A DNA stretch of 64,000 bases from Epithemia pelagica. Taxonomy: Eukaryota > Protista > Bacillariophyta. The stretch is from positions 1,674,001 through 1,738,000 of the forward strand of contig OX337238.1 in the NCBI GenBank assembly GCA_946965045.2, read 5' to 3'. A model generated the notes under the pieces. That model ran no database searches, had not been told where the DNA came from, and worked only from the letters and a program-made list of their open reading frames with translations. Both the position numbers and the translations under genes were made by a program. How positions within the stretch are numbered: position 1 is the stretch's first letter; each line of letters begins with the position of its first letter. This document shows, piece after piece, positions 1-51,700 of this stretch.

Positions 1-1503
1 ACTTGTGGATCGCACATGTACTTATGTTCCAATCGTATGTAAGGGTTGCCTCCGACCATGCAATTCAAATGGAGAATGTGTCAGTATTCGGGTCTGTTGG
101 AAGTCCAACAATAAATATTTCATATGGCGTTTCTGTATGATCGTTCGAAGAGCCTTACTCTTGAATCAATACAGGCCTGACCTGACTTCTGGGGTAGGAG
201 GGATACCCCGATACACACAGGTGGTCATAGTCAAAGCAGTTCAACAGATGTACAAGGACCTCCGGTACCCCAATGAATCATCACAATTCTCTAGCCCCTT
301 CATACACATGGGAACAGAGGTCGAGTGGACAAAATGGTTGGTATCAACCTGCTTCATACAACAAACGCCGAAAACCACAAAGTAACAAACCACAAAACAA
401 GGGGGTACTTAGTGAAAGCCGTGGAAACAATCTTCATCCAGAAGAAACCCAGTTCCAAAATGACGGCGACATCACATTTCTCGAGGATTTATTTCAATTG
501 AGAGAAGAGAAATTCCAGAAAGAGAAGAAAGGACATCACAAAAATAACAACAGCAACCACGTCGATGAATTGGCACCACGAGTAGGAGATGTCAGCTCTC
601 CTGAACCAGGTATATCCGTCGAAGGGCATCACGAGAAAACAGAGTCTCCAAAGAAAACAGAGACTCCTGGTAACGTTGTTGTACCACCATCCATTCCCCG
701 ATACAACTATCGTTCCACATACTAATCCCAAGAAAACGGTCATTCGCAATCCATATGCGGTCAAAAGCCGTATCATTGACCCCTCTGTGGTCACTGCGAA
801 ATTTAAGACAATACCATTGGCTCCGGAATCACCGAGTTATTCTGATCGAGTTGGTGACCGAGATGCAGACTTTCACCCTGAAGTGGTTAAGTTCACCAGA
901 CTTGCCAACAAGGTATTGGGTTCTACAGAGAATATAGCAGATGCCATTTGTCCAGTTTGTTTGTTTCAAGATAACCCAACAACCGATCGGTATCTAACAG
1001 GAAAATTCTGGCATCCTTTTGGTACTACTCACCGGTGCCGTGACCATTGTTACGGTTGTGGGGTACATTGTGATGTATGCGAAACAGGTGGCAATGAATA
1101 CAAATGCTGACAATGCATTTTCGACCACGATGGTAAACTCCATGATAAACTTGTGGATCGCACATGTACTTATGTTCCAATCGTATGTAAGGGTTGCCTC
1201 CGACCATGCAATTCAAATGGAGAATGTGTCAGTATTCGGGTCTGTTGGAAGTCCAACAATAAATATTTCATATGGCGTTTCTGTATGATCGTTCGAAGAG
1301 CCTTACTCTTGAATCAATACAGGCCTGACCTGACTTCTGGGGTAGGAGGGATACCCCGATACACACAGGTGGTCATAGTCAAAGCAGTTCAACAGATGTA
1401 CAAGGACCTCCGGTACCCCAATGAATCATCACAATTCTCTAGCCCCTTCATACACATGGGAACAGAGGTCGAGTGGACAAAATGGTTGGTATCAACCTGC
1501 TTC
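1..1503 (+). repeat. Direct duplication: 1-355 repeated at 1149-1503 (offset 1148 bp); the first copy probably starts before the window
   Basis: Both copies start ACTTGTGGATCGCACATG and end ...ATCAACCTGCTTC; ORFs 5..385 and 1153..1584 share their first ~117 aa. Confidence 0.95.
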
Positions 1504-1584
1504 GGTCCCTTTTTCAATCACATGGTGTTATTCCGATACTGTTTCCAAGCCATCATGAACCTCAAAGAGAATACCGCGACTTAA
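356..1584 (+). pseudogene. Disrupted Cys-rich (putative Zn-binding) protein, paralog of 3369..4244
   Basis: ORFs 589..1110 and 1153..1584 are in the same frame, separated by one TGA (1108-1110) inside KC*QC. A frame change from ORF 273..725 is needed near 700-720. Shares CKxCxRP, FxWxFCM and FIH...WxxWLxS motifs with 3369..4244. Confidence 0.6.
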
Positions 1585-1596
1585 ATTAAAACAGAC

Positions 1597-3200
1597 GTCG
1601 ATGTCCCAAACTTCCATGGACATGGAGCAAAGACACCGTCCTATAGCTTGAATCACTCCAAATATCGGTAGAGACACTTGGGAGATCATAGGCATGGATA
1701 ATATAGGCTCTGAACTCATCTACCATGGACTGAAAGTCTTGTTGTAGACCATACCAGTGTGGTGTTGTCGATGTACCAAACTTCCATGGACATGGAGCAA
1801 AGACACCGTCCTATAGCTTGAATCACTCCAAATATCGGTAGAGACACTTGGGAGATCATAGGCATGGATAATATAGGCTCTGAACTCATCTACCATGGAC
1901 CAAAAGTTTTGTCGTAGACCATACCAGTGTGGTGTTGTCGATGTACTAAACTTCCATGGACATGGAGCAAAGACACCGTCCTATAGCTTGAATCACTCCA
2001 AATATCGGTAGAGACACTTGGGAGATCATAGGCATGGATAATATAGGCTCTGAACTCATCTACCATGGACTGAAAGTCTTGTTGTAGACCATACCAGTGT
2101 GGTGTTGTCGATGTACCAAACTTCCATGGACATGGAGCAAAGACGCCCTTCTATAACTTGAATCGCTCCAAATTTCGGTAGAGACACTTGGGGTATCATA
2201 GGCATGGATATCATAGGCTCTGAACTCATCTACCATGGACCAAAAGTTTTGTCGTAGACCATACCAGTGTGGTGTTGTCGATGTACCAAACTTCCATGGA
2301 CATGGAGCAAAGACGCCCTTCTATAACTTGAATCGCTCCAAATTTCGGTAGAGACACTTGGGGTATCATAGGCATGGATATCATAGGCTCTGAACTCATC
2401 TACCATGGACCAAAAGTTTTGTCGTAGACCATACCAGTGTGGTGTTGTCGATGTACCAAACTTCCATGGACATGGAGCAAAGACGCCCTTCTATAACTTG
2501 AATCGCTCCAAATTTCGGTAGCGACACTTAGGGTATCATAGGCATGGATGTCATAGGCTTTGATAGCGTCTATCGCGGACCAAAAGTCTTGTTGTAGACC
2601 ATACCGGTGTGGCGTTGTCGTTGTTTCAACCTTCCATGGGGGGCATGGAGCAACGACACCCTTCTATGACTTGAATCGCTCCAAAATTCGGTACAGACAC
2701 TTGCGGTATCATAGGCATGGACGTCATAGGCGCTGAACTTGTCTATCATTGATCAAAATTCTTCTTGTAGACCACACTGGTGCGGCGTTGTCGTTGTCCT
2801 AAACTTCCATAGACTTCTTGGAGCAAAGACATTTTTCTGTTCATCGAATCGACCCAGGTCTTGGTACATATCCTCGGGATATCATAGCCATGTATACCAT
2901 AGGCTCTGATCTCATGTGCCGTCAAGATAAAGGCTTGCAATAGATCAGATCGGTTTGGCGTTGTCGCCGTGCCAAAATTCTATGGACATGGAGCAAAGAG
3001 ATCCTTCTCTTCATGGAATCGGTCCAGATTTTGGAAGAGACCCTTAGTGTATCATTTTTATGGATACCATAGGATCTGATCTCGTGATCTGTGACGAGAA
3101 AGGCTTGCAATAGACCATACCGATATAGCGTTGGCCTTGACATTGTCCAAAAATTTCGTAGGCTCATTTTATCCTCCATTGAATCGTATGACAAAGCAAA
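1597..3200. repeat. Tandem array of ~9.5 units of 170-173 bp
   Basis: Unit starts (GTCG...) at 1597, 1767, 1937, 2107, 2277, 2447, 2617, 2790 and 2963. Units are near-identical on the left and increasingly diverged to the right. Confidence 0.95.
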
Positions 3201-3368
3201 CAAGACTCAGAAATTCTTAGCGTTATTTGAATTTTTCCCCATAAAAACGATAAGAACTGAGAGATAGTCAGGATCAGTTGTTTTCTCCGAAGTACATCTT
3301 CTTGCAACCGCAAACAGAAATCCTCTTACCATTACTCTTCGAGAAGACCGTTCGATATCGTATAAAAG

Positions 3369-4244
3369 ATGGAAGACTCGTCTTGGTTGAATACTGTTGC
3401 AATATGGAATCTCATCTCGAATACACGATTTGATGTTGAAATTTCGTTTTGTCTTCGTAGCAGTGATAGGAATGTTGTTCTCACTGAAGATGTTGCGGCG
3501 GCAGCCGAAGGAATCAAAAACAAATTCAAGGATCTTGTAGACAAGATTATTAATCACGAGGGACGACTTGATGTGATTTCCATTATGAATGGTAATCAAG
3601 AGGGATATACAGAAGAGCACCAGTGTCAGATGGGCACATGGGCAGACAGACCGGAATTCCTTGACGGACCCTTCATCTGGAAACAAAACTTCCTCGAGAC
3701 ATGTCTTGTTTGCGGTAAATTCACCTGTAATCAACGGGTAACAATATACACATGCAAGCATTGTTTCCGTCCTTTACAAGTACCTGGGTCGTCTTCATCT
3801 TGTGATACCACTTGTGCAAAGACTCCCTGTACTTCATCCATGAACATGTCCTTCGTATGGGAGTTCTGTATGACTTTAAGAGAGGCATTCCAAGCGTGGT
3901 TTGACTTCCACAAGTTTGGAAAAAACAGAAAGATTCCCTTTTTTGAATATATCCCAGCCAAAACTTGTGGGATCTTGACAAAAACGGTCGGTAAAGTATG
4001 GAGAGAAAAATTGGAGCCTTATTACGACGAGGATACCAAGTGGCGTAGTCCATCTCATTTCATTCACACCGAGAAACAATGGGCATTGTGGCTGATTTCG
4101 TCACCACCTGGTTGCTCCTTTCGCAACTATATGCCTATTTTTACTGCATGTTACCATATAGTACAGGAAAATCCAAAGAAACACGCTGCTGGTGTACCAC
4201 ACCAGAGTGCTCGTAAGAAGCGAAAGACGTGGAATGCTCCCTGA
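3369..4244 (+). CDS. Hypothetical Cys-rich protein (291 aa), paralog of the disrupted ORF at 356-1584
   Basis: ATG-initiated ORF with CLVC, CKHC and further Cys pairs, plus motifs shared with 1153..1584. The true start may lie upstream. Confidence 0.6.
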   Translation: MEDSSWLNTVAIWNLISNTRFDVEISFCLRSSDRNVVLTEDVAAAAEGIKNKFKDLVDKIINHEGRLDVISIMNGNQEGYTEEHQCQMGTWADRPEFLDGPFIWKQNFLETCLVCGKFTCNQRVTIYTCKHCFRPLQVPGSSSSCDTTCAKTPCTSSMNMSFVWEFCMTLREAFQAWFDFHKFGKNRKIPFFEYIPAKTCGILTKTVGKVWREKLEPYYDEDTKWRSPSHFIHTEKQWALWLISSPPGCSFRNYMPIFTACYHIVQENPKKHAAGVPHQSARKKRKTWNAP

Positions 4245-4283
4245 ATTTGTTTTTCCTTGGTGATGAATGCATCCAGAAAGAAT

Positions 4284-5390
4284 TTATAATGTTCCGCTAC
4301 GAATGCCTTGAACCGTCTTGGTTATACCATGGTCCTCTCTTGTTTCGTTGACAGTTGCATTCATAGACCTGGAACTTACTGCCCAAAACCAACTAATAGT
4401 GTCGTTCTTCATGTTCCCATCTTTATGTTGTCTTTGTGTGTGTATTGACGTTCCATGCCGGATCACACGTCCATCCCATAGAACCGAAACCCCATGAAAT
4501 AGTTGTATACAAAGACCATGGTATGTAGTACCATCATACTCCACAAGAATATTTGGCAAAACAAAGAACCAATTTTGGGAGTCACCAGGGATTGTCTCTG
4601 TCCAGATTGCGAATGAAACAGAACCATCGTGAACATCATAATGTGTCGTGTTCATGAGGTTCAAACTTAGGGTAATGGCTGAGGTCATACCTCCGACTCT
4701 TCCTCCGAATTCACTAGGCATTTCTTCGCCAGCTGAATCTTCTAGATACCGGAATGTTGGAATCACCCCAGGATATTCGCGTTCACAGAACCTTTTTGCC
4801 GCTGTACTTATTTTCGGCAGTATCATCGATAATGTCTTGTCCTTTGTAAATAATTTCTCGGAAACGAAAGTAGAACCGTTTCCTCTTGCCGCAGTATTAC
4901 CAACAGTAGTCATAGATCCCAAGTCTCCCTTATTACATCTGGCATTGGCCGCCTTTCTCAGAGACCCAGTACGTGTAAATTCCCTTGCTCTGTAGTGTAA
5001 TAGGTCCAACAACGTCTGGTCCTTCCGTAACAGGGATGTCACTCGAATGTAACTAAGTGACTCTGGTCTCCCATCATTTCGGCGTGTCCGAACAATGAAA
5101 GTAATGTTTCCCCGAATACGATGGTCGTATACCAGTGGCCTTGGGTGTGTACCGGACGACATTTGCAACCATAGGTTTCGATGCAAAGCACCACTAACAT
5201 ATCTCCGACTCCCTTTCTTATCTGAGTCATTCCTGTTTATAATCAGCCTTGTTGGATATTGTTCCCGTGACATGTGATGTGTCATCGACTGTTTATTCCC
5301 TGGCTTTTCGATCTTTCCCTTGTCATCGAGGTACACGTCAGGAGGTAAAAAAGTGGGCTCCCATCCTCCACATCGGACCATTGGTAACAT
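4284..5390 (-). CDS. TET/JBP-like Fe(II)-dependent dioxygenase domain (probably the last exon of a larger gene)
   Basis: NLMNTTHYDVHD (HxDxxD), FFVLPN, GVSVLWDGRVIRHGTS (distal His) and upstream GSM...G match the TET/JBP pattern (compare JBP1 NxRxxTxxHxDxGD ... FDxxxxH). Confidence 0.75.
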   Translation of the reverse strand: MLPMVRCGGWEPTFLPPDVYLDDKGKIEKPGNKQSMTHHMSREQYPTRLIINRNDSDKKGSRRYVSGALHRNLWLQMSSGTHPRPLVYDHRIRGNITFIVRTRRNDGRPESLSYIRVTSLLRKDQTLLDLLHYRAREFTRTGSLRKAANARCNKGDLGSMTTVGNTAARGNGSTFVSEKLFTKDKTLSMILPKISTAAKRFCEREYPGVIPTFRYLEDSAGEEMPSEFGGRVGGMTSAITLSLNLMNTTHYDVHDGSVSFAIWTETIPGDSQNWFFVLPNILVEYDGTTYHGLCIQLFHGVSVLWDGRVIRHGTSIHTQRQHKDGNMKNDTISWFWAVSSRSMNATVNETREDHGITKTVQGIRSGTL

Positions 5391-6311
5391 TCCTTCACAG
5401 TTTTGCCATTATTAGTAAGATGTTCACCCCAATCTAGACTCCAACAACGATGAATCTTTTTCAAGAATGCATTACTTGCAGGTTGGCCATCTTTGTGTCG
5501 CAGACGTAACCAAGACAACGGTAGTGGGACTGATGACGATGTGATGTTGGACGACCTTGATAGTTCTTGAAATTGACGCACACATGTATAAAAAACCCCA
5601 GCCAAAGGGAAGAGGATAATGATATCTCTGAAGAGGTGATCATTTTCGTCAAGACATAAATTTTTGTTAGTCCGAATCATCATGACAGGATCTTTGAATA
5701 TAGAGGACGACACATGTGTTGTCTTTTTCCTGATTTCTCTATATCTTGTCCTCGACAAGGTACATTCCAATATGAATGCATTGTGGATCGTTTTAGTTAC
5801 AAGACCCACCGGGATTTGAGCAACAATCATAGGACAACATTCTGGTATAATGTTCGAATGACTGACAACGTCATCTCTTGTCTCCTAAACATCATCCATA
5901 GCCTTGTTGTATATTTCTGGGATACGTGCAAAGACACTCGGGATATCTTTCATATCGACCTTCCGTTGTATCATATCCTTTTCGAACGACAAACCAAAAC
6001 AATCTTGATCGTCGTAACTTCCAAAGCAACGCTGCAGTAGATGCGATAGCATCCTTATTCGATCGATGTCCTTGTCCAAGACAAAGTAGCACATTCTTTC
6101 ATGTGCACTTTCGTTCCGATGCAACATGGCGACCACTGTTTCACTTATACGTTGCGTTTTCTTCTTTTCGTACTTGGCATAGGTCTCCTGTGTACATGTG
6201 AGTCTCGAAATCGTCTGATCCGATGCCATATCTTCGAAAGTGGGACGAATATGTTTCTTCTTTATGGATGTCACCTCCGCTCTAGGATGTGTGCTTGTCG
6301 TTTCCGAACTT
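5282..6311 (-). CDS. Linker exons of unknown function between the RING and TET-like regions
   Basis: ORFs 5885..6274 and 5282..5830 are in one frame, separated by a single TAG (5885-5887). Candidate introns 6312-6418, 5842-5925 and 5393-5475 join them in frame to the flanking ORFs. Confidence 0.45.
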
Positions 6312-6408
6312 CTTGTAGTACAAACACATAGTTAGTACGCGGATAGAAATGCCAAATACCTGAAACTAGAACGTCTCTTCTCTTGATGGAGAGTACTAAT
6401 AATATAGA

Positions 6409-7080
6409 TCAGACTTGCCTTTTCGCTTCTGTGTTACTGATCGTGATAGTAGAAGATTCAGTTTGGTCTCTCCTATTCTTCTCTCTTTGTTGTTCTTTAC
6501 TCATGAAACGGAGAGTTTCCAACGGTACACGACCCCATGCTGTCTCTGGAAATACAGGGACCGGTCTGTAGAGACCACGATGTTCCTCTTTTGACACGCC
6601 AACTTCTTCAACTGAACCATCATGTGCATTGGTGTACGTAATCGAAGCAATATCTCCGTTGCACAAGGGGCAACTCTCATTCATTTCAGGAGGTGTCGAT
6701 TTCTGTTTCCCCATAGGAACTTGTTTTTCGGTGGTAAGGACATGACCAAGACACACCCGACAAAACTTGTGCCCGCATCTCTCGATCCGACAGTCGTTAG
6801 GACGCTGTCCATGGCATATGGCACAATATTGTTCGGAGTCTTCATCATATTCGTCTAGGACGATTGTCTTGTCTTTCTTCGCAATTAATTCTGTCTCATG
6901 TAGATCATGTGGTATTAGCTCAGCATGACTATGACCACATATGGAACAAAATCGATTCTTCACCGAATTCCGGATGAAAGTACATGTTGGACAATGATAA
7001 TGAGGACAGTTTGAGGTTTCTTGCCTTGTCCAACTCACGATAGAAAAGGTCCGACTTCTATCCAGATCCTTTTTAAGCAA
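6409..7080 (-). CDS. RanBP2/NZF-type zinc finger plus C3HC4 RING finger protein region
   Basis: CPTCTFIRN...FCSICG (NZF-like, with TF motif) and CAICHG...CGHKFCRVC...CPLC (C3HC4 RING). No ATG at the ORF start, so probably an internal exon. Confidence 0.8.
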   Translation of the reverse strand: MLKKDLDRSRTFSIVSWTRQETSNCPHYHCPTCTFIRNSVKNRFCSICGHSHAELIPHDLHETELIAKKDKTIVLDEYDEDSEQYCAICHGQRPNDCRIERCGHKFCRVCLGHVLTTEKQVPMGKQKSTPPEMNESCPLCNGDIASITYTNAHDGSVEEVGVSKEEHRGLYRPVPVFPETAWGRVPLETLRFMSKEQQREKNRRDQTESSTITISNTEAKRQV

Positions 7081-7138
7081 TGAGGTCCCACTCGTTCAAT
7101 GTTCGTACCAGATCCAAAAATCGCCGATCTTCGCGAAG

Positions 7139-9388
7139 TCATTCGAGCGCCTTGTCCGCTCCTGTAATCTCTTGTATCACTTTAATGTCCTCGAATCGTT
7201 CATCGTCGGAATCCAGCACATCTTCCATTACCTCCCCTCGATCTTTCCCTTCCATTATAAACCAGCGACTGCGTTTGATCCTTGGACGTGTATCGTCATT
7301 AACGTCCTTGAAACATACACGCAGAGTCGAATCACGTTTCGCTTTATTGTTAGCCGTACTCACGATATGATTGCAGGCCTTGTGACATTCTCGCCTACAC
7401 GATGGCAATTCTTGAGCCCATTTCCCCATCATCTGATCACAGGACATATTAGGGGACGCCTTTGACAGGATCTCGTCGATCACACATATTATTGATACTT
7501 GGGGAAGCGTACACGCACTTGGTGCCACCGGATTCGGATACTTCTTATAAATGAATCTCCAGTCACATCCAACGAGCTCTTCCTTTATATCAACGCTCAA
7601 GAATGATTGGATTTTCTTATCGTCGTCCAATAGCCTTAGTTTCCGTAGACATCGAATCACTGTAGGCCTCCACGAGCGAATATCCCTTGTCAATAATGGA
7701 TCGAATATCAACACTTCTCTTTGATGTGCTTGTAAGAGGATTAAGACGGGATCAAAAGCTTCATACTTGGTAGTGACGACGACCAATGTAGTATCGGAAG
7801 ACGACGAACTCAAATCCATTGCAGTCGTTGTGTCCATTCTCAGACTATCTTCGTCGATTTGCTCAAAGGAAACGGACTTGTTGTGCCATTTATGAACCAC
7901 CAGCACAAGCATCGACCTGAATATGAGGGGAGGGATTCCCTTAAACTTAGTCTTCTCTTGAGTATTCGTCCGTAGCAAAAGGTTTCGTCTGTACTGGCGA
8001 TGTGGGACAAAAAGGACGTCCATTTTCCCGTTGTCATGTTGTAGAGAACCATTCTTGTTGGTACAGCAAGCACAGGTAAAGCCAAATCGCAAAACAACTT
8101 CATGGATGCTTCCCTTACGTCTAACGGCACTTTCTTTACAGAGATCCCAAGCTTCATTGATCGCTGACATCGACTGTTTGAGGGACCAGTTAGCCATATG
8201 AATCAAACGGTTGTTAGTGAAAGATGCAAGGTCGTCTGATGGACCAGGTTTATTCTTGAGAGGAGGTGGTTTCTTTGGTATTCCTTTAGGTTTGTCGCTA
8301 CCGTAGTCAACATGTGATTTACTTTCCAACAGACCCACCTTCGATTGAGAGGAAGATTTTCTTGTCGTCGCTTGTTTTCCTTTTTGTGGTTTCTTTTTCA
8401 ATGCAAGAGTATCAAAAATGGAACTCCGATCCTCCTCGGTCGCTGACAGAGACTGAGATGGTGATTTGCTCTCGTTATTTGAAACAGTGAAAATGGTAGA
8501 ACTTGTTGCACCATCACATTTACTGTCTGACGCTCGTTTACGGCGTTTCCTGTCTTGAGATCGTTGTTCATGTCGCCCCTTCTGATACTCCTTCGTCTTT
8601 GTAGCGTATTCCCGTTCCGTCGTCTGGTAATATGAAATTAGAACCGCCAAATTGGAATGGTCGTTCGCGGGATACTTAGCAGCTCTTGGTATGTCAAAAT
8701 AAGGACGAAACCAGCAATCAGGAAGTGTAAGGGCTAATGCTTTTTCAACATCGACTCCTTCCATTTCATAGGAGTCAGATTCCAATACCCGATAGACAGC
8801 TGCCATATGTTGAACGCTCCAAACCATTTCTCGGACTGGTATTGTTCTGTCTTTCCGAAACTTTGATCTATCAGACGTCATGTAGTCCAATATTTTTGCA
8901 GCCACGACATTAAGCCGTCTCTCCATCGAATACGAGTTGAGGACAATATCAGCGAGCATAGGATGGGCTCCAAGAAACACCTTGAGGGATCGAGTAAAGC
9001 TTGCGCTCGACTTTGATCTTGTCGTGCACGGGAATTCCTTGTCCCACAGACGAAGTGCGTCTCCATATAGAGTTTGTTCGAATAGGTCGATTCCTGGTGA
9101 AATAAAACTACCAGCTCCGTCACTCTTGTTTCCCTCTTGTTGTTCTTCGATCGTCTCTACAAGTCTCAGTATCTTCGGGAAACAAACAGCAGCATGCGAG
9201 GCGATATCACTGAAAATACTTGATCCACAGCGCAAGAGGGATACGAATATGGTTTCACCTCCATATGTAGTGGAGAAATCTGTCCAATTATCAGTGTTGG
9301 AATAAACAGAACAATACCACTCGATTGTATATTCATAACATATCAAGTCTGGGAAATATCGATCGGAATCTTCTACCGAATCAGCCAT
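7139..9388 (-). CDS. Hypothetical 749-aa protein with basic/Ser-rich middle and possible degenerate Ulp1/CE-clan protease-like C-terminal fold
   Basis: Long ATG-initiated ORF; NLS-like RKRRKR; VLILLQAHQREVLIFDPL and LPQ..C only loosely resemble Ulp1 motifs. Confidence 0.55.
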   Translation of the reverse strand: MADSVEDSDRYFPDLICYEYTIEWYCSVYSNTDNWTDFSTTYGGETIFVSLLRCGSSIFSDIASHAAVCFPKILRLVETIEEQQEGNKSDGAGSFISPGIDLFEQTLYGDALRLWDKEFPCTTRSKSSASFTRSLKVFLGAHPMLADIVLNSYSMERRLNVVAAKILDYMTSDRSKFRKDRTIPVREMVWSVQHMAAVYRVLESDSYEMEGVDVEKALALTLPDCWFRPYFDIPRAAKYPANDHSNLAVLISYYQTTEREYATKTKEYQKGRHEQRSQDRKRRKRASDSKCDGATSSTIFTVSNNESKSPSQSLSATEEDRSSIFDTLALKKKPQKGKQATTRKSSSQSKVGLLESKSHVDYGSDKPKGIPKKPPPLKNKPGPSDDLASFTNNRLIHMANWSLKQSMSAINEAWDLCKESAVRRKGSIHEVVLRFGFTCACCTNKNGSLQHDNGKMDVLFVPHRQYRRNLLLRTNTQEKTKFKGIPPLIFRSMLVLVVHKWHNKSVSFEQIDEDSLRMDTTTAMDLSSSSSDTTLVVVTTKYEAFDPVLILLQAHQREVLIFDPLLTRDIRSWRPTVIRCLRKLRLLDDDKKIQSFLSVDIKEELVGCDWRFIYKKYPNPVAPSACTLPQVSIICVIDEILSKASPNMSCDQMMGKWAQELPSCRRECHKACNHIVSTANNKAKRDSTLRVCFKDVNDDTRPRIKRSRWFIMEGKDRGEVMEDVLDSDDERFEDIKVIQEITGADKALE

Positions 9389-9505
9389 ATTAACGTGCGA
9401 TTCAATCAGCTTGAGGAAGAAACAAGGAGAAATTTTCTTTCGATGCAGGGTTCCGATGCAACTTGATACTACCGTTTCTCAAGCTTGCGTGATGGAAACC
9501 CTGGA

Positions 9506-10290
9506 GGGTCTTGGTCGATAGGGATGGAGGAGTGAAGGATATGGGTGTACCAACTTGATGTCTCGGTCCTTCCAGTCAAGAATCAGTAGCAAATACAACA
9601 ATCCAATAGGGTCTTGGTCGATAGAGATGGAAGAGGGAAGTATGGGGGCGCACCAACTTGGTGTCTCGGCCCTTCAACAGAACCACCAATCAAGATACAG
9701 CAATCCAATGGGGTCTTCTTGGTTAATGTAGATGAAGGAGGGAAGGAGAGGGGTGCACCAACTTGGTGTCTCGGCCCTTGTTCCAATCGGGAAGGAGAAG
9801 CAACACAGCAATCCAACAGGGCCTTGGTCAATGGAAATGGAGGGGTGAAGGAAATGGGTGCACCAACTTGGTGTCTCGGCCCTTGTTCCAAATGAGAAGG
9901 AGTAGCAACACAGCAATCCAACAGGGTCTTGGTCGATGGAGATGGAGGGGTGAAGGAAGTGGGTGCACCAACTTGGTGTATTTTGCCCTTTGTTCAATAG
10001 AATCCTCACCAATCTGACCGTTCAGATCGTTGAAAATGGTCTTATGGGATAATAGGAGGGAAGAAGCAGCGGCAATCCAGCAATCCAACCAGTTTTGGTC
10101 GATGGAAATTGATGGGAGAATGAAATGGGTGCACCAACTTGGTGTCTTCGCCCTTTTTCAAACAGAACCACCAATCCAGTCGTTCAGAGCGTTGAAAATT
10201 GTCTTGTGGGATGATAGGAGGAAAGAAATAGTTGCCAAACAGCGATCACATGGTTGGGTTTTCATGGAAACAGAAGAAAATGATTAGTGG
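9506..10290. repeat. Tandem array: 103-105-bp units followed by two ~166-bp units, with palindromic core CACCAA-C-TTGGTG
   Basis: GGG(T/C)G(C/T)ACCAACTT cores at 9543, 9646, 9751, 9856, 9961 and 10127. Confidence 0.9.
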
Positions 10291-10400
10291 GCATATAGGA
10301 AAACGACAAAACAAACTCTCACTGTTGTCTTGTCGACTTGGCTTACCTAGCACCTTTCAAATTTGAAAAAGGAAATGATTCTCTTTGTGTTCGCCTGTTT

Positions 10401-10466
10401 GTTGTAGCTGTTGTTGTTGTTGTTGCTGTTGTGTTGTTGTTGTTGTTGTTGTTGTTGCTGCTGCTG
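10401..10466. repeat. (GTT)n/(GCT)n microsatellite
   Basis: Directly visible trinucleotide run. Confidence 0.95.
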
Positions 10467-10767
10467 TGTGTTTTTTGGGGCGTTGGGGGTTGATGTGAGT
10501 TGGATGAGGCACTCTATGACTCTATCGTCAAAAAGTGATCACAAAAGTGGGAGAGTATATCTTTTGTGTGGTTGTTGTGTGAGGAAAATCTAATTTTCAG
10601 CGTTCTTCTGTGATTTTGTGTCCATTGTTCTTCGTATGTCACTGTGACGTGATTTGGTGGTGGAGGAGAAATTTGTGGGTCGCTTTTGGAGTTTACGTGC
10701 GACTGGAATACTAGGTGTTATATGTGTAGCTAGTAGTTAGGTATCTAGGCAAAGGTTAGGCTCTGTG

Positions 10768-10946
10768 CACGCGTTTCCACATACAATAAACATGCTCACG
10801 CGGGTGTCAACACGTTTCACGCGTTGTCTACACGTTTCACGCGCATTCACGCGCAATCTGGAGCGCCACGCGCTTCGTACGCGCCAAATGCGCGTGATCC
10901 GTGTTCTGGGGGTGCTGCACGCGCCTATTGGGCGTGTGTCACGCGC
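10768..10946. repeat. Cluster of ~9-10 (C/T)ACGCG motifs
   Basis: CACGCG/TACGCG near 10768, 10797, 10818, 10838, 10848, 10867, 10878, 10918 and 10940, plus one inverted copy near 10890. Confidence 0.8.
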
Positions 10947-11097
10947 CTGTTGGTGGAATTCCAGTCACTTATCTTCAAAAAATCTCTTTAGACGTGCGCC
11001 AAAGAGAGAGGAAGAAGCGAATGAAAGCGAAGAGGATGGGCAACGGATTCATCATCACCAAATAAGAATACATAGCAATGAGCATCCGCCCGATGAG

Positions 11098-12609
11098 TCA
11101 TTCGTCGTCCTTATCTAGGATAGTTGCAGCTCCACAATATTTTAGAGATGCAAGCGATGCGGCCGGTTTCGTACCGCCAGTTTGATTCGCTTTCTTCGCA
11201 TAATCGTTATCTTGCGTCGCCGTTCCGTGCGATAGTCGCCAGAATCCACAAATGGCACACCAATGCCACGTTGTTCCGTTCACATTTTTTGTTTCAGGCT
11301 CTCCATCACCGGGTGGTTTGGATTTCCAAGGAGCCTTCGGAGCTTTTGTCTTTCGTTCGCCTCCTTTGCCGTCGTTGTTGTAGGCTTTGGGGCAGTCTTT
11401 CTTTAAATGATCCGGTGATCCACAGATATGGCACTTGCGACCGCCATTGTTGGACGTGCCTTTTCCATTGGTGGCGCCTCTCTTCAAGGCAGCAGAAACA
11501 CTCTTCTGAACGAGATTGTTTATCTCGGTTTTTGTGAACGACATCATTGCTTCTGGCGGATTTCCAGAGTCGCTCTTTCCAGACGGTCCCCAACGCTTGG
11601 CCGTCAACAACAACGTATACTCCGCATTCGCTTCCTCCACAAGTTGTTGGACTGAGATGTAATCAGGTTCAGCCGCTCGTCCTTCAATGGTTGCTCTTGA
11701 GAGGCCATGGACTTTGGTGACCCATTGGTTGACCGCTGTGCTCCGAGCAATAAACTTCACACGAAATTGCTCCACTGACGATGTGCAGAGCTGTTCATTC
11801 AGGAGAAATGGAGCGTCGCTTGGCACATTCTTTCCAAGCTCCACACAAGTCTGTAGAAACTTGGTGGTGAACACTTTCACATCTTCTCCAGCCGTTTGGC
11901 GAAGTTTGTGGGCTTCCAGTTGCTGTTTCAACGCTTTGATTCGCTGGAAGGAGGCGGTTCTAACCTCACGCACGACGTAAATCCAGAGGATCGGCCCATA
12001 CTTCAAATCGCGTGGTAGCAGTGGGCGAATACTGTTCTTCACTGAGTCATCCAACAGTGACATAATGGCCTTATACGCAAGGTCCATGTTGTTGGTGGAG
12101 TAGTCATCGTACAAGGGTGTTGTTGCTCCCATTCCAGTTCTGAAGTGATTGACAACAAAGGCTGGGGTGAACTCGGAGTCTTCTTGCAGGATGTCAACAA
12201 GTCTGGTGGGATCTTGTGGATCAGGAAGGTAGAATTCACTGTCCATCCCATGAAACTCCATGTGGTCGGCAACCATCTCTGCAAGCTGCTCAATCGTGAG
12301 GCTCTTTTCATCTCGTGTAAACTTGCGCGGCTCACTTTCACTACTATCCACAATGGTCGTCTTCTGTTTGAGCGCCTTGTGGGCTTCCGTCGGATCTTGC
12401 AACTGGTAGCAATATGGGCTCCGCGGAACGGTTCGTGTCGTTGCAACGAACGTTACATCGGTCGGTCTGCCTCCAGTCCATGGATGGATTCCATTCAACC
12501 CTCCAAGCTGTGGCGGTGTTGGAAGAGGACGTGCTCGAGGTGTAGGTGGTGGACCCGGTGGTGCCCCTGGTGCTCCTCCACCAGCAGACATGGTTCTTCC
12601 CAGCGTCAT
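11098..12609 (-). CDS. gag: Copia-type Gag protein (503 aa)
   Basis: Zinc knuckle CHICGSPDHLKKDC (CX2CX4HX4C), a second WHWCAICGFWRLSH motif typical of diatom copia gags, and a Pro-rich N-terminus. Confidence 0.85.
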   Translation of the reverse strand: MTLGRTMSAGGGAPGAPPGPPPTPRARPLPTPPQLGGLNGIHPWTGGRPTDVTFVATTRTVPRSPYCYQLQDPTEAHKALKQKTTIVDSSESEPRKFTRDEKSLTIEQLAEMVADHMEFHGMDSEFYLPDPQDPTRLVDILQEDSEFTPAFVVNHFRTGMGATTPLYDDYSTNNMDLAYKAIMSLLDDSVKNSIRPLLPRDLKYGPILWIYVVREVRTASFQRIKALKQQLEAHKLRQTAGEDVKVFTTKFLQTCVELGKNVPSDAPFLLNEQLCTSSVEQFRVKFIARSTAVNQWVTKVHGLSRATIEGRAAEPDYISVQQLVEEANAEYTLLLTAKRWGPSGKSDSGNPPEAMMSFTKTEINNLVQKSVSAALKRGATNGKGTSNNGGRKCHICGSPDHLKKDCPKAYNNDGKGGERKTKAPKAPWKSKPPGDGEPETKNVNGTTWHWCAICGFWRLSHGTATQDNDYAKKANQTGGTKPAASLASLKYCGAATILDKDDE

Positions 12610-16246: not shown

Positions 16247-18844
16247 TTATTGTCTAACTGCTCCCGTGCGTCGTGTCGTCGGAGGAGGAACCCTTCCCTT
16301 TCGATGATTGCGTTCGCAACTCTTGACGTGGACCGCCAAACGATCAGGCATAAAGGTGCGGCCACAATATTGGCAGGCTTCTAACGCATGTTCTTCAAAG
16401 ACTTGTCGGGCCAAGACATTGCGTTGACTGGCAGGACAGTGCGGAGGAAGTTGCGGAACGGGTTTTCGTTGCGACCGTTTTGATACGAGTTTGGCTTGTC
16501 GTTGCTTCCAAGCCTTTTCACATTGGGGAATATGAAACTTGTCAATGGAATGAATGGTGTATTTGCGACCACAAATGTGACACAAGACGATATTTTTGGA
16601 TTCTTCCGAGACAGTGGTGGCACGGGGTGGGGGGACGACGGGTTGACAATAGTCTCCACCAATGGGTGGTGGATCGTGACCATGGGCCGGTGCACAACTG
16701 CGCAAGTGGACTTGCAATCGATCGGGCAAAAAGGTTCGTTCGCAATACTGACATTTCTCCAAGGCATGTTTGTTGTACACTTGCATGGCCACTTCGTTGC
16801 GAAGTTGCAGCGAGTTCTTGGCAAATTTATTCAGTGACTTGGTCTTATTGGATCGTCCACGGCGGCTACTGCTCTTGGTCGCACTTTCAGTTATGGTGGA
16901 AGTTTGCGGTGCCTCGTCGATGTTGTCTTCCTTTCTGCCCTGTGTACGAGATACAAAAGTGTTCCATTTGCGTCGACTGGGTAATCGAGGCAAGGGTTTG
17001 CGTTGCGCCGAGGGCAAGCGCCGTTGTCGATCCTTCCACAATTGTTCGCATTGAGGAATGTGAATGCCAATGGAATGAGTGGTATATTTCCGACCGCAAA
17101 TGTGACAAATGACAGTGTTACTGGCTTGATCCAACTTGGGGAGTGTTGTTGTGGGTGTTTTGGTAGATCGAGGAGGCCATTCCTGTCCATGAGACCGAGC
17201 ACAACTAGGCAAATGGACTTGTAATCGATCTGGTAAAAAGGTACGATGGCAAAATTGACATTTCTCCAAGGCATGATCATTGTAGACCTGCAGCGCCATT
17301 TCATTGCGTTCTTCCAGGGTCAGTAACTGACGTTTGCTCCGTCCTCGAACACTGGTGGTGGCGGCTGTTCCAGAGGACATTGGTTGTTGTTGTTGTTGCT
17401 TTTGCCTGCGCCACGATCGTTCCGACGGCAATTGTGGAACTGGTCGACGTTGGCGGGAAGGCAATTGCAGCTGTCGTTGTTTCCACAATTTTTGACATTG
17501 TGGAATATGAATGTCAATGGAATGGGTAGTGTACTTGCGTCCACAAATATGGCAAATCACTGTATTGCTGGCATGTTCTGGCCGGGGGCGTGGACTTGCC
17601 GCCGTCGCAGTAGCAACTGGTGTACAGTGAGGCGGCGAAGGTCCTTCTTGACCATGCGCCCGTGCACAACTGGGCAAATGAACTTGCAATCGATCGGGCA
17701 AGAAAGTTCGATGACAATGGGGACATTCCTCCAGGGCATGGGCATTGTAAATTTGCATAGCCAAGGCATTGCGTTCCTCCAAGGGCAACTTTTTGATTTG
17801 ACGTGTCGAAAGGGCTCGAGTCATTCCTGGAGGACCAGCACCACGCGTGGTGGAATCCACCACATTGCCGGATGAAGGTTGTGGTGGTCCTCGTCGTCGT
17901 CGCCACGATCGTGATTTGGTCGTGGAGGCCAGGGGATGGCTCGAGCTTGCTACAGAGTTGTTGTTCGGGTTGGATGTTGTTGTTGTTGCGACAAGACTTA
18001 GTTTGGGAACGGGTTTGCGTTGCTTGGGTGGCAAGAGAGCTTGTCGTTGGTTCCACAATTTTTCACATTGCTTGATGTGAAGATCAATGGAATGAATGGT
18101 ATATTTTCGACCACAAATATGACAGAGGACCGTATTGTGTGCCTCGTGAACACCGACATGTCGATAGGGTACGACCGATCCTCCCTTCTTCTTGCGACGA
18201 CTGTTGGTGCTAGTAGTGACAGACCGAAGAGTGCTATCAGTTCCACCGGCTGCCGGTTCTTCTCTAGTCGTTGGTGATGTACACGGACGACAGGTCAAGG
18301 CTTGTTGCTGTTGATGTTGTTGGTAGACTTGTTGGGCGGCTTGATTGCGTTCGTGGACGCTGCGCAACTGTTTGTTGGTACTCCTCTTGTTACCTAGTTT
18401 GGGAACGGGTTGACGACGTACTTGTCGTCCCTCTTGGACCGCTTGTTTCTGCTCCTGCTTCCACTCGCGTTGACACTTTGGAATGTGCAATCCAATGGCA
18501 TGAACGGTAAAGGTATCACCACAAATGTGACACAAGACGCGCTCTTGTTCGTGCTGCTGCTGTGACACGGACGACACTGGTTGCATGCCTTTGTCCTTTT
18601 GTGGCTGCTGATTCGGTTGTGCCGACTCGGGGACGTTTGTCCAGGAAGGAGGATGCTGCAGCTGCTCTTGTTTGGTATACTTGGATCGTCGCGATGGAGT
18701 TGTCGAGGTCGAGTCCACTTTTGTCGGTGTTGTCGTCGTGGATTCTCCTGGAGCGTGCCAGACCATGGTCGTTGTTGTTGCTCTTGTTGTTGTTGTGGTG
18801 GTTCTTCCAACGCGTGATGGAGGTGCTTCAGTGTGGTTGGACAA
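16247..18844 (-). CDS. Multi-repeat C2HC zinc-finger protein (ZC2HC1/zf-C2HC_2-like), 865 aa
   Basis: Five CHICGxxY/FxxHxIxxHIxxC fingers alternating with four CxxCxRTFxPDRLxVHxxSC fingers, separated by low-complexity linkers. Confidence 0.85.
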   Translation of the reverse strand: MSNHTEAPPSRVGRTTTTTTRATTTTMVWHAPGESTTTTPTKVDSTSTTPSRRSKYTKQEQLQHPPSWTNVPESAQPNQQPQKDKGMQPVSSVSQQQHEQERVLCHICGDTFTVHAIGLHIPKCQREWKQEQKQAVQEGRQVRRQPVPKLGNKRSTNKQLRSVHERNQAAQQVYQQHQQQQALTCRPCTSPTTREEPAAGGTDSTLRSVTTSTNSRRKKKGGSVVPYRHVGVHEAHNTVLCHICGRKYTIHSIDLHIKQCEKLWNQRQALLPPKQRKPVPKLSLVATTTTSNPNNNSVASSSHPLASTTKSRSWRRRRGPPQPSSGNVVDSTTRGAGPPGMTRALSTRQIKKLPLEERNALAMQIYNAHALEECPHCHRTFLPDRLQVHLPSCARAHGQEGPSPPHCTPVATATAASPRPRPEHASNTVICHICGRKYTTHSIDIHIPQCQKLWKQRQLQLPSRQRRPVPQLPSERSWRRQKQQQQQPMSSGTAATTSVRGRSKRQLLTLEERNEMALQVYNDHALEKCQFCHRTFLPDRLQVHLPSCARSHGQEWPPRSTKTPTTTLPKLDQASNTVICHICGRKYTTHSIGIHIPQCEQLWKDRQRRLPSAQRKPLPRLPSRRKWNTFVSRTQGRKEDNIDEAPQTSTITESATKSSSRRGRSNKTKSLNKFAKNSLQLRNEVAMQVYNKHALEKCQYCERTFLPDRLQVHLRSCAPAHGHDPPPIGGDYCQPVVPPPRATTVSEESKNIVLCHICGRKYTIHSIDKFHIPQCEKAWKQRQAKLVSKRSQRKPVPQLPPHCPASQRNVLARQVFEEHALEACQYCGRTFMPDRLAVHVKSCERNHRKGRVPPPTTRRTGAVRQ

Positions 18845-47065: not shown

Positions 47066-50000
47066 ATGTCCACACGACAAACAGCAAACCAACCAGGCAT
47101 GTCGTCCCTGTCGCAGCTTGCCAATCTCAACAAGAAGGAACTTTTACTCCTTTCTGAAGAATTTGAAGATGACGACTTTGACGAGGAGGATGACGATAGA
47201 TTGGACAAGACAACGGGGACCTTGGGTGATTGGGGCATGCCCGTGCAATCCCGAGTGGAGGAGGTGACCAAACCACAGCCCCAACAACCACAAGACGAAG
47301 AACGAGATGAAATTCAAGAAGTCAAACGTATTGCGCAAGGAGAAACGCGGGTTGTCCGTATTTGGAGAGTTGTGGTGGCCGTGATTTTGATCACAGCCGG
47401 AGCCTTGGTGTCCTATGGAACTTACTACTACCTCGATCAACAATTGGATGACGAAACGGTGAACAAGGTACGCTAGATACTCCCAAACAGGAAGGATAAT
47501 CGAGTTTGAACTCATTTTCTTCTGACACAATTACATCCTTTTTTATCTGGTTGCAGTACAAATTGTTTGTAAATACCATTCATGATGTGTCCCACATGCA
47601 CTTTTTGAATTCTGTCACAGCCTGTCAATCTTTGGCTCGCGCCATGACAGCTGAAGCCACGGCAGCGGCTCAGGCGGCTGCCGCAGCCGCAGGAGTCGAA
47701 GAAATGGCACCCTCTTCGATTCTTCCCTTTTTTACCATGCCCCAATGGGAAGTTCATGCCAGCGAAGCTCGCGAACGGGGAGGGATTGAAGCCTTTGTCT
47801 TTCTCCCGTATTTGGTGAGTCAACGAGACATTGATACCTTTACAGAACATGCCAAGCAACATGCCGCGACCTGGCAAGAACAAAGCATTGCCGTTCATCA
47901 GGCCTACAATCCACACTTTGCCCCTTTGAACTTTGGAACGAGTAGCACAACCGAAATTTATGAATTGGATACTAAGCGTCCCACAACGGTCAATGATACC
48001 GCTCTTATGCAACAAGTGATGAAACAACTACCTCAACTACAACAATTAAAGCAACTGCAACAACAAATGCAAGAGCAGCTCCTTCAACAACTCCAGCAGC
48101 AACAACAAGAAGGAGGGCCACTACCGCCACCACCAGAATTGCCACCTTTTGAGCTTCCCCTCCCCCCACCCATTCTGCCCTATTGGACCATGTCACCGCC
48201 ACCACAGAACAACTATGACATGATGATGGCCAATGCCTTTCCCTTGTATGCCAAACAAATTCAAGATGCTATTGTCACTCGAAGTACGTAATCTGTCATT
48301 CTGTCTATGTATGGTCCCAAAGATTGAGTATGTCCACCGCTCATTATATCCTCTGTACTTGTGATTTTCTTGTTTCCATTTGTTTTGGCCCATTTGCCAA
48401 TTTGTTTTAGTGTTTGGTTTTGGTGCCATGGATTTGCAATTGGGAGATACCCTGGACGACTTGATTGGCGTGGAAAGTCATCAGGTGGTCCATGCCATGC
48501 GACACCCCACAGCGGCGCGGCAACCGGGTGTTGATCCTGCCTCGTATACGCGACAAACTCATGCGTATGCCATTCAACCCGTTTTTACCAGTCTCTCCGA
48601 TACCATTTTACCCATGACTGCACCACCCATACCAGTTGCGGGTGCCTCTGGAGGCGATGCAACAACAGCGGCAGGAGGAAATGCTCCAGAATCCATGGGA
48701 ACTCAGGCAGGGACACCAGGCCCGATTCCCATGGGTCCCCTGTCCTTGGAAGATCAAATTCGCAATGGCATTGGTGGATTCTTAGTTGTATTTGGTGGAA
48801 TTGACGCCTTTCTCATCAATATTCTTCCTACGGGAGTCCGTGGAATTCGTATTGTCATCAAAAACTCGTGTGGAGATACGGTGACCTATGAATTGGACGG
48901 CAACGATGTAAGTGATAAACGAACCAAGGAACGAGTCTGGAAGACTGGTTCTTTTGCCCCCGTGTCTCACGCTCTACTGTCTATGTTGATATATGTGTCT
49001 GTACGCGGAATCCTCGCAACGATTGGCAACTACCAGGCAATATTTATCGGAGAAGGTGATCTCAGTGACCCAGACTATTCCCATTTAACACGAGAGATCA
49101 ATTTCCCGCTTCCGACTACGCCTCTTGGTGGATACTGCAGCTATCATTTTGTTGTCTCGCCTTCCTCGTTGTTTATGGAGGACAACTCATCCAATCTACC
49201 CATTATTTTCACCATAGTGGTTGCTGGTATCTTTGCCATAATGGTTGTGACCTTCTTCATCTATGACATGCAGGTTGAACGCCGAAACAAGAAAATGGTC
49301 AATACAGCCGCTCGGTCCAATGCGATTGTATCATCCATTTTCCCTTCCACCTTTCGAGATCGTCTCATGGCACATGAGGACGAACAAAGGCCTCAATCCG
49401 GGGATAGCGAGGGAGATCTTTTGTTGCAACCAACAAAGACTCATCTGAAGACTTTCTTGAACGCCAATGTCGACAATGATGACGACGAAATGCTTCTCAT
49501 GACTTCGAAACCCATTGCTGACCTCTTTACCGACACTACGATCATGTTTGCTGATATTGCAGGCTTTACGGCCTGGAGTTCAGTACGAGAACCCTCGCAG
49601 GTTTTCATCTTGCTCGAGACCGTCTACCGAGCCTTTGACATGTGAGTTCCTTCAAGCATACGCTGCAGTGAACAGCATTGGAGAATCGCTCACATTTTTG
49701 TTTTCAGCATTGCCAAGAAACGTGGGGTCTTCAAAGTCGAAACTGTTGGAGACTGTTACGTCGCCGTATGCGGACTCCCCGATCCTCGTTTGGACCACGC
49801 CGTTGTAATGTCACGATTCGCTCTGGATTGCCTAACACGAATGCAGTCCCTCTCTAAGAAATTGGAAGTGATGCTTGGACCAGACACGGGAGACCTGGGA
49901 ATGAGGATTGGCCTTCACAGTGGTCCTGTCACAGCTGGGGTCCTTCGTGGTGAAAGGTCTCGTTTCCAATTATTTGGAGACACCATGAACACGGCGTCAC

Positions 50001-51700
50001 GTATGGAAAGCACCGGCGTGGTCAATCGAGTACAAGTGTCCGAAGAAACGTCCAAGCTTTTGGTGGGGGCTGGAAAGGAGCACTGGCTCATGCCGAGAGA
50101 AGAACCAGTGGAGGCCAAGGGCAAAGGAATCCTCACCACATTCTGGTTGAAAAAGTCGGGGGTTGCTTCTTCAGACAGATACTCGGACGATCACACTACC
50201 TCCATGTCCACGTCGACTTTTGAAGGAGGACTAGTGGATGTTTCGGCTCTGTCGAATTCCTTTGGGGCTATTTCAAGCAAGACCTCGCGTCTAATTGGAT
50301 GGAATGTGGAAGTCCTGTTCACCCTTCTCAGGCAGATCGTCGAAACGAGAAGAGATCGAGGAATTGAACCCCTTTTGTGCAGCCCTGAAGATCTAAAACG
50401 ATATGAATCCAATCTAGCGCGCGTCATCGCCCATGACAACTCAACAGTCCTTGAAGAAGTAGAAGAAGTCATTTGGCTTCCGCATCACGATCGAAGTGAA
50501 AGTATGACAAACACGACACTTGGTCAAGTTCGAGCTAAGCAAGAATCCATCACAACATCAAACAGCGATACGCTTCAATCTGCTTCAAATGAACTGGTCG
50601 AATATGTAACAGGAATTGCTACCATGTACAATGAGAACCCTTTTCACAACTTCGAACACGCATCTCATGTCACCATGTCTGTGGTGAAGTTGTTGTCTCG
50701 AATTGTTGCACCTTCCGAAGTTGATTATTACGAAAATCATGCGGCTTCGATCGCCAAGGAACAACCGATCGGGCAACAGGGGACTCGGCCATCATGTTCC
50801 ACCTTGCATGATCACACGTACGGTATCACATCCGACCCTCTCACTCAATTTTCGTGTGTGTTGTCAGCCTTGATTCATGACGCTGATCACCCTGGTGTCC
50901 CCAATGCCCAGTTGGTGAATGAAGGTCAAGAAATGGCCTTGCGCTTCAAAGGGAAGAGCATTGCTGAACAAAACTCGGTGGAATTAGCATGGAATATGCT
51001 AATGGAGGATCGTTTTCGGAACCTAAGATCAGTCATTTATGTTTCTGAGCTCGAGCTAAAGCGCTTCCGTCAACTTGTCGTAAATTCAGTAATGGCCACG
51101 GATATTGTGGATAAGGAGCTCAAAGCATTGCGCAATGCACGATGGGAAACAGCGTTCTGCAAGAATATGCCATCTGGTGGAAGCGAGCTGGAGAATGTGA
51201 ATCGCAAGGCCACGATTGTGATCGAGCATCTGATTCAGGCCTCTGATGTTGCACATACAATGCAACACTGGCATATTTATCGAAAATGGAACCAGCGATT
51301 CTTCATGGAATGTTATATTGCCTACAAAGAGGGACGAGCAGAGCAGAATCCGGCAGATTTCTGGTATCAAGGCGAGATCGGCTTCTTCGATTTCTACATT
51401 ATTCCTCTGGCAAAGAAGTTAAAAGATTGTGGTGTATTCGGTGTATCGAGTGACGAATATTTGAACTACGCGACGAGCAACAGGAACGAGTGGAAAGTAA
51501 GAGGATCCGAACTTGTTGCCGAAATGATGGAACAGATCCAAGCGAAGAGTATGTCGTCTCGACGACTTACTCGGGATGTACGTCTTTCTCCAAAAACAGT
51601 ATGGAGAACCACACCAATTTCAGCTTCTCATCCCTCGAAAGCTTCAAGTGATGTTCCTGACCGAGGAAGTAAAGACAAAAGTATCAAGAATCCATCGTGA
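47066..51700 (+). CDS. Receptor-type class III nucleotide cyclase-phosphodiesterase fusion; exons 47066-47467, 47557-48283, 48411-48907, 49037-49641, 49708-51700
   Basis: TM1, extracellular region, TM2; FADIAGFTAWSS, KVETVGDCYVAV, RFQLFGDTMNTASRMES; PDE motifs NPFHNFEHASHV, LIHDADH, IQASDVAH; canonical splice sites in phase. Confidence 0.9.

Follow-up and report, generated by a model that had tools for sequence, protein, structure and literature searches.

DNA transposons of fungi that encode TET/JBP genes were reportedly described by Iyer et al. in 2014. Such genes have been recorded in fungal DNA transposons of the KDZ, EnSpm/Plavaka, hAT, Harbinger, IS3EU and Helitron lineages, where they are read as anti-silencing devices directed against methylation-based silencing; the words RING, ubiquitin and fusion are absent from the text of that study (Kojima 2025, PMC12730594). 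Here we examine a 64,000-nucleotide stretch of contig OX337238.1 (Epithemia pelagica assembly GCA_946965045.2, positions 1,674,001 to 1,738,000, forward strand; hereafter the window), which carries genes for a RING finger protein (ORF1; ORF, open reading frame) and a TET-like oxygenase (ORF2) side by side, an arrangement that has so far been described only loosely, as the oxygenase-carrying transposons of fungi. A multicopy element is represented at positions 355-10994 of the window (minus strand) by a copy that is truncated and dead. Taken as a whole, we consider it probable that this is a dead copy of an element that is bounded by inverted repeats and that encodes a RING-bearing ORF1 and a TET-like ORF2. 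The window holds an unremarkable dead copy, and its family probably represents a novel form of the TET-carrying transposon, for which a RING-TET fusion is plausible.

The original prediction for this locus was a single host gene, with four exons and three introns and a start near position 7080, that encodes an NZF-RING-linker-TET protein. The locus is instead one member of a family of 17 ORF1 and 23 ORF2 variants (clusters at 90% identity), about half of them full length, which are spread over many contigs of one assembly. For comparison we used copies L009 to L013, taken from ENA assembly ERZ21939226 and near-identical to the window element. Uninterrupted ORF1 is 1003, 1003 and 1002 amino acids (aa) long in L011, L012 and L013, respectively, with an ORF2 of 647 aa and a spacer of 180 nt from ORF1 to ORF2. 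The intact ORF1 of L011 (P0020, 1003 aa) surfaced in a search with the 749-aa ORF of the window, to which it is 97% identical across all 749 residues. In the intact copies ORF1 thus consists of that 749-aa ORF fused in frame with the RING-bearing ORF A, and the proposed protein start at 7080 falls within it; ORF A itself has no in-frame ATG ahead of the RING.

A base-by-base alignment of the copies identified four lesions that are private to the window. Two of these lie in ORF1: a change of CGA to TGA at 7141, and a deletion at 7092/7091 of 32 nt that are present in L009 and L010. Because CGA replaces the TGA at 7141-7139 in L009 and L010, and because both retain the 32 nt, the 749-aa ORF and ORF A belong to one frame; the arithmetic agrees, in that the offset of 61 nt and the 32 nt add up to 93, which is divisible by three. 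The deleted 32 nt code for the first pair of Cys residues in RING finger 1 and hold both parts of ORF1 in register. In L009 and L010 the ORF1 frame is continuous apart from stops that differ from those of the window.

The other two lesions lie in ORF2, and it is these that two of the three proposed introns would have repaired. On the minus strand, pieces B and C form a single open frame (6331-5285) with one TAG at 5887-5885, which is GTG in both L009 and L010, and ORF D (5390-4284) lies one base out of register with that frame. The proposed intron at 5842-5925 only bypasses the TAG, and it spans protein sequence that is conserved in the diverged L015 lineage described below. The proposed intron at 5393-5475, which was to join C to D, encodes a conserved ...AF[IL]KKIH..W... 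block and would excise residues that align without gaps to uninterrupted relatives (41% identity to L008/P0002). The real shift is a run of T at 5352-5347, expanded from T4 to T6 in the window: L010, with T4 at the run, encodes ...SPLLPPD..., as the relatives do, and L011-L013 read through this segment. The long relatives are colinear, in one frame, through the end of B, C and D. Each of the two introns does no more than skip a lesion, at the cost of conserved coding sequence; both are artefacts, and the copy comparison identifies 5842-5925 and 5393-5475 as pseudogene scars. An assembly error was considered as the source of the window lesions and ruled out: among the lesions are two base substitutions and a 32-nt deletion, and other copies have lesions that differ from these.

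The ORFs, frames and motif coordinates of the four-exon host gene were all verified, its three junctions do keep the frame, and the motifs are present. We nevertheless regard it as very improbable: its second and third introns excise conserved coding sequence and are needless in intact copies, its RING-bearing ORF continues an upstream ORF in other copies, its NZF belongs to a RING finger (see below), and the window copy has four disabling lesions.

The sequence comparisons indicate that ORF1 encodes a 1003-aa orphan protein with two C-terminal RING fingers. The predicted RING was confirmed in ORF A by a Pfam zf-C3HC4 match of 23.9 bits, above the cutoff of 21; the same family scores 30 bits in the paralog P0051 and, over the whole protein, 19.1 in full-length P0020, just under the cutoff. 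The stretch previously called an NZF corresponds in alignment to the latter half of a P0051 finger assigned by Pfam to zf-RING_2 (RING-H2), and Pfam yielded no zf-RanBP (NZF) match in the window ORFs or P0020. Read from the sequence, the stretch departs from the NZF signature W-x-C-x2-C-x3-N-x6-C-x2-C in having His for Trp and x4 before Asn. Because this stretch corresponds to zf-RING_2, with its first Cys pair inside the deleted 32 nt, ORF1 ends in two RING fingers rather than in an NZF and a RING. Pfam gives only RING- and FYVE-type zinc fingers in P0020, with no SRA, PHD, tandem Tudor or UBL domain; a parallel with UHRF1 had been drawn for the locus, and no reader domain of the UHRF1 type was detected in P0020 or in the intact ORF2 protein (P0035).

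The remainder of ORF1 resembles little else. Pfam, NCBIfam and PDB sequence/profile searches of the 749-aa ORF were blank, a PDB sequence search of ORF1 gave weak RING-domain matches only (E 0.04 or worse), and a comparison of ORF1 with 1.8 billion representative proteins returned 10 fragmentary matches, none of them informative. An AlphaFold (AF2) model of ORF1 residues 1-770, built from a 15-row alignment, had a predicted local distance difference test score (pLDDT) of 34 and was unusable and uninformative.

For ORF2, the predicted TET/JBP domain was borne out at the level of the fold. A word search with ORF D returned 17 relatives, all without a Pfam domain and several of them uninterrupted (543-642 aa). 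Residues H250-x-D252, H299 and R308 (D-ORF numbering) are invariant in the 17 relatives, and all four are kept in the window copy. An AF2 model of 368 residues, made from an alignment of the D relatives, had a pLDDT of 73 and a predicted template modelling (TM) score of 0.79. When the model was compared with the PDB by Foldseek, the eleven best matches were TET2 (ranks 1-5, E 2e-8 to 4e-7), CMD1 and CcTet. Those TET/JBP matches span 260-378 alignment columns of the 368-residue model, at 10-14% identity (13-14% for TET2) and TM-scores of 0.36-0.46. FTO, AlkB, DAOCS and other 2-oxoglutarate (2OG) oxygenases rank lower, and the TET/JBP matches improve on the E-value of the best FTO match (4e-5) by as much as three orders of magnitude. 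Pfam, NCBIfam and PDB sequence/profile searches with pieces B, C and D were blank, and P0035 matched no Pfam family. Because of the Foldseek ranking and the invariant residues, the TET call stands at the level of fold and active site despite the Pfam blank, and we predict from the model that the C-terminal half of ORF2 is a TET/JBP-like Fe(II)/2OG dioxygenase, in its fold and in its metal- and 2OG-binding residues. It is unlikely, in our judgment, that ORF2 instead belongs to another class of 2OG oxygenase (an AlkB/FTO-like repair enzyme, or a protein or small-molecule hydroxylase) that does not act in a TET-like manner on methylated bases. The missing Pfam Tet_JBP match, the low identity to TET2 and the presence of FTO, AlkB and DAOCS among the Foldseek matches (E 4e-5 and weaker) would suit such an enzyme, but every one of the eleven top structural matches is a TET/JBP member, and their E-values surpass that of FTO.

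Comparison of the copies also delimited the element. Five copies share a common first base, at which homology stops sharply and beyond which the upstream flanks are unrelated. The 9-mer found at this end in other copies, CGTCTAAGG, recurs as an inverted copy at the opposite terminus (L014 2125; L009 17329). These 9-bp ends were found by comparing copies; a scan of window positions 1-12500 for long inverted repeats gave no ends. The element is approximately 25.3 kb long in the ctg1346l copy, and it holds further orphan ORFs in addition to ORF3 and ORF4 (Table 1), among which the 1013-aa (L014:5763-8804) and 696-aa far-end ORFs were blank in a PDB sequence search. Among near-full-length copies, the ratio of nonsynonymous to synonymous substitution rates (dN/dS) is 0.36-0.68 for ORF1 and 0.13-0.39 for ORF2, values that indicate purifying selection on the element ORFs.

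These data also bear on whether a transposon need be invoked at all. A recently amplified cluster of host genes, with segmental duplications in repeat-rich DNA and some copies functional, would be compatible with a dN/dS below 1, which also fits functional host paralogs, with the satellite arrays inside the unit, and with our finding neither a transposase domain nor a target-site duplication. Such a cluster seems to us improbable in view of the identical sharp end in five copies with unrelated flanks, the 9-bp inverted repeat at both ends, the independent stops and deletions in many copies, and the presence of an ORF2 relative in an element with CACTA ends.

That relative, P0012, lies in a block of approximately 11.97 kb (L003:427-12395; also in L002 and L004-L007) on six ENA metagenome contigs. 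The block is 99.8-99.97% identical among the six contigs, in unrelated flanks, and has perfect 22-bp inverted ends (CACTAG.../...CTAGTG); it also carries a 1066-aa orphan ORF. By its sequence, the block looks like a CACTA/EnSpm-type element with a TET-like gene of its own. A further ORF2 paralog, of 587 aa and 32% identity, stands alone in L011 (L011:2906-4669), about 3 kb (3.2 kb) outside the element, and is adjoined by a 789-aa ORF (L011:5356-7725) with a weak match to the Ulp1 protease family (Peptidase_C48).

The remaining junction of the original prediction, at 6418-6312, fared differently from the other two, and it is backed by conservation in three diverged lineages. Its elements are a donor AG/GCAAGT (6420-6413), a branch-like TACTAAC (6337-6331) and an AAG acceptor (6314-6312); the phase-2 junction keeps the frame and reads ...AKR/SSE.... 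This composite splice signal occurs once in the window, both strands considered, against 0.12 expected per 128 kb in shuffles. We compared the window type with two diverged lineages from the same genome, L015 (ORF1 about 30% and ORF2 45-54% identity) and L033 (ORF1 30% and ORF2 63%). In all three, the octamer AGGCAAGT closes ORF1, with the stop following within 0-2 codons and the preceding tail unconserved, and in all three an AG acceptor shifts the phase-2 ORF1 into the frame of ORF2. In the window and L015 the AG acceptor is preceded, at approximately 19 nt, by a CTAAC, and in L033, at approximately 24 nt, by a TTAAC. The candidate intron measures 107 nt in window-type copies; that of L015 (11114-11184) measures 71 nt.

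From the acceptor onward the ORF2 frame is open, and the residues ahead of its ATG are KKKHIRPTFED-M in the window type, KKKHTRPSFED in L033 and RRRHRPTTKD-I in L015, such that the ATG itself is not conserved. Over the last 11 codons before the ATG, four of the seven nucleotide changes between the window and L033 are synonymous. Among six window-type copies, the 107-nt candidate intron has 4 variable sites and the next 82 nt have none. Because three lineages keep the donor, a frame-joining acceptor and conserved coding sequence before the ATG, a RING-TET fusion is plausible, and on this comparative evidence we lean towards a conserved phase-2 GC-AG intron at 6418-6312 that joins ORF1 to ORF2. 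The product would be a RING-TET fusion of about 1675 aa after splicing, and ORF1 alone, ending in KRQV, from RNA that keeps the intron. On the intact copies, in which ORF2 is complete with its own ATG, intron 1 would seem dispensable; the comparison with L015 and L033 speaks against this. Stop-codon readthrough from ORF1 into ORF2 was ruled out because the two frames differ.

It is a real possibility, if not one that we would call probable, that ORF1 and ORF2 are separate adjacent genes, in which case ORF1 would stop at KRQV-TGA, ORF2 would be translated from ATG 6229 through its own promoter or by reinitiation, and there would be no fusion. Both ORFs are complete in intact copies; at 647 aa, ORF2 is near the range of its longer relatives (543-642 aa), which start with Met and a basic patch; an insertion in the spacer of L011 left both ORFs undisturbed; and the ORF2 relatives elsewhere have no RING neighbor. 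Separate genes would not, however, be expected to show an open stretch of 82 nt before the ATG that is invariant in six copies and conserved as protein in L015 and L033, with mostly synonymous changes, nor an ORF2 start codon that is Ile in L015. In three lineages AG/GCAAGT is retained although the ORF1 tail that it closes shows no other conservation, and a 180-nt spacer is short for a terminator and a promoter.

The L011 insertion is 344 bp long (L011:13020-13363) with imperfect inverted ends, resembling a miniature inverted-repeat transposable element (MITE), in a copy that is otherwise intact. ORF1 of L015 is split by an insertion of approximately 7.5 kb (L015:2300-9829) that contains a Copia-type reverse transcriptase (RVT_2), and ORF2 of L015 has an extra N-terminal linker of approximately 190 aa made of short repeats.

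A number of results weigh against our favored reading of the family, that of an inverted-repeat-bounded element with a RING protein and a TET-like oxygenase that may be joined by splicing. No transposase or recombinase was found by Pfam in any element ORF, or by NCBIfam in the window ORFs, and no consistent target-site duplication could be made out in the two copies for which both ends are available (L012/L014 and L009). Pfam Tet_JBP gave no match at E<=1 for the window D, for P0035 or for the 17 family members, and the TM-score to TET2 is a modest 0.45. Each ORF is complete alone (ATG 6229, stop 6409). No RING or ORF1 neighbor lies beside the ORF2 relatives in 17 metagenome loci of the Joint Genome Institute (JGI), in L008 or in L002-L007, and the stand-alone relatives start at a position comparable to that of ORF2. 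A search of the whole protein library, which is composed of intron-blind gene calls, returned no fused ORF1 protein. The features of the element are listed for the window copy in Table 1.

Table 1. Features of the element copy in the window (positions are those of the 64,000-nucleotide stretch).
Feature	Position	Strand	Remarks
5' terminal inverted repeat, 9 bp	10986..10994	-	CGTCTAAAG in window, CGTCTAAGG in other copies
Tandem repeats, units of 105 and 162 bp, upstream of ORF1	9505..10259	.	array present in L009-L013, of variable length
ORF1, first 749 codons	7139..9388	-	ends at copy-specific TGA 7141-7139; CGA in L009 and L010; intact copies read on
ORF1, C-terminal part	6409..7095	-	ends KRQV + TGA; predicted RING finger 1 remnant 7008-6937, predicted C3HC4 RING finger 2 6825-6646
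Site of 32-nt deletion	7091..7092	-	relative to L009 and L010
ORF A	7080-6409	-	RING-bearing ORF downstream of the 749-aa ORF
Candidate phase-2 GC-AG intron, 107 nt	6312..6418	-	would join ORF1 to ORF2
Open conserved coding stretch in ORF2 frame, before first ATG	6230..6311	-	...KKKHIRPTFED; no in-frame ATG
ORF2 (647 aa in intact copies)	4284..6229	-	broken by TAG 5887-5885 and T6 run 5352-5347
Predicted TET/JBP-like double-stranded beta-helix	~5147-4371	-	H-x-D 4643-4635, distal His 4496-4494, Arg 4469-4467
ORF3, 291 aa	3369..4244	+	opposite strand; conserved, intact in copy L012; dN/dS mostly 0.1-0.5
170-bp satellite array, 8.7 units	1597..3083	.	several kb in L010, L011 and L012
ORF4-region remnant	355..1596	+	423-aa ORF4 in L012; match to the full element lost at 355

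At the truncated end of the window copy, positions 1-355 duplicate approximately 1150-1504 of the window and are 99% identical to L012 20208-20562, which indicates that this end has been rearranged or nested. Just outside the opposite end, at 11098-12609 (minus strand), is an ORF of 503 aa that has a CCHC zinc knuckle and a gag-like look, and an 865-aa ORF with seven C2HC zinc fingers is found at 16247-18844 (minus strand). Elsewhere in the window are two convergent 636-aa ORFs (49790-51700, plus strand; 51984-53894, minus strand), each with a guanylate cyclase catalytic domain and a cyclic-nucleotide phosphodiesterase domain, and an HMG box occurs among the other ORFs. This content is of protist type and marks the contig as eukaryotic and not human. 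ORFs for piggyBac-type transposases (DDE_Tnp_1_7) are present near element copies in two loci (window 60929-62722, plus strand; L009:1-183), and Helitron-like PIF1/AAA_30 helicase ORFs lie upstream of the L013 element copy (L013:1-638 and L013:2947-3363).

Diatom-like algae methylate their transposons. By the precedent of the fungal elements, the dioxygenase would oxidize a methylated base in the DNA of the element itself (5-methylcytosine is the likeliest), and in this way may counteract methylation-based silencing of the element. By the same precedent, the RING fingers could recruit an E2, with ubiquitylation of chromatin or of a silencing factor at the same place. We therefore put forward, as a tentative picture that we hold to be possible but doubtful, an undescribed DNA element of diatom-like algae, approximately 25 kb long with inverted-repeat ends and no known transposase, in which retention or removal of a GC-AG intron would yield either the double-RING protein alone or a fusion of approximately 1675 aa between a ubiquitin ligase and a TET-like oxidase, which would alter both the ubiquitylation of chromatin and the methylation of DNA where the element resides.

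With a TET-like oxygenase on an element of a marine protist, the "anti-silencing oxygenases" known until now from fungi would look like a recurrent accessory of transposons, and diatom-like algae would gain a specific candidate for active demethylation of DNA. What would be new here is a dioxygenase lineage that is invisible to Pfam, its physical coupling to a double-RING protein, and an unclassified type of element. We also wish to highlight a warning for annotation: "introns" that restore a frame in a single copy may be the scars of a pseudogene, and comparison of multiple copies separates the two.

Compared with TET2, CMD1 and CcTet, the ORF2 protein has the double-stranded beta-helix as its best match, the H-x-D...H iron ligands and a downstream Arg. 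It differs from them in sequence, at 10-14% identity, and in structure, with TM-scores of 0.36-0.46; as CMD1 illustrates, family members are able to use other co-substrates and to make other products. The likeness to UHRF1, if the splice is real, is that a RING and a module acting on DNA methylation would be combined in one polypeptide. The protein described here differs in having no SRA, PHD, tandem Tudor or UBL domain, in carrying an oxidase rather than a reader, and in its mobile-element context. The closest counterparts are the TET/JBP transposons of fungi, which are likewise multicopy, with inverted ends, a dioxygenase gene beside other ORFs, and purifying selection; one of their lineages, EnSpm/Plavaka, belongs to the CACTA superfamily, to which the ends of the P0012 element also point. 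The element in the window differs from these fungal transposons in its protist (probably diatom) host, in having no recognizable transposase, and in a dioxygenase that lies below detection by Pfam Tet_JBP and is coupled, probably by splicing, to a 1003-aa double-RING protein.

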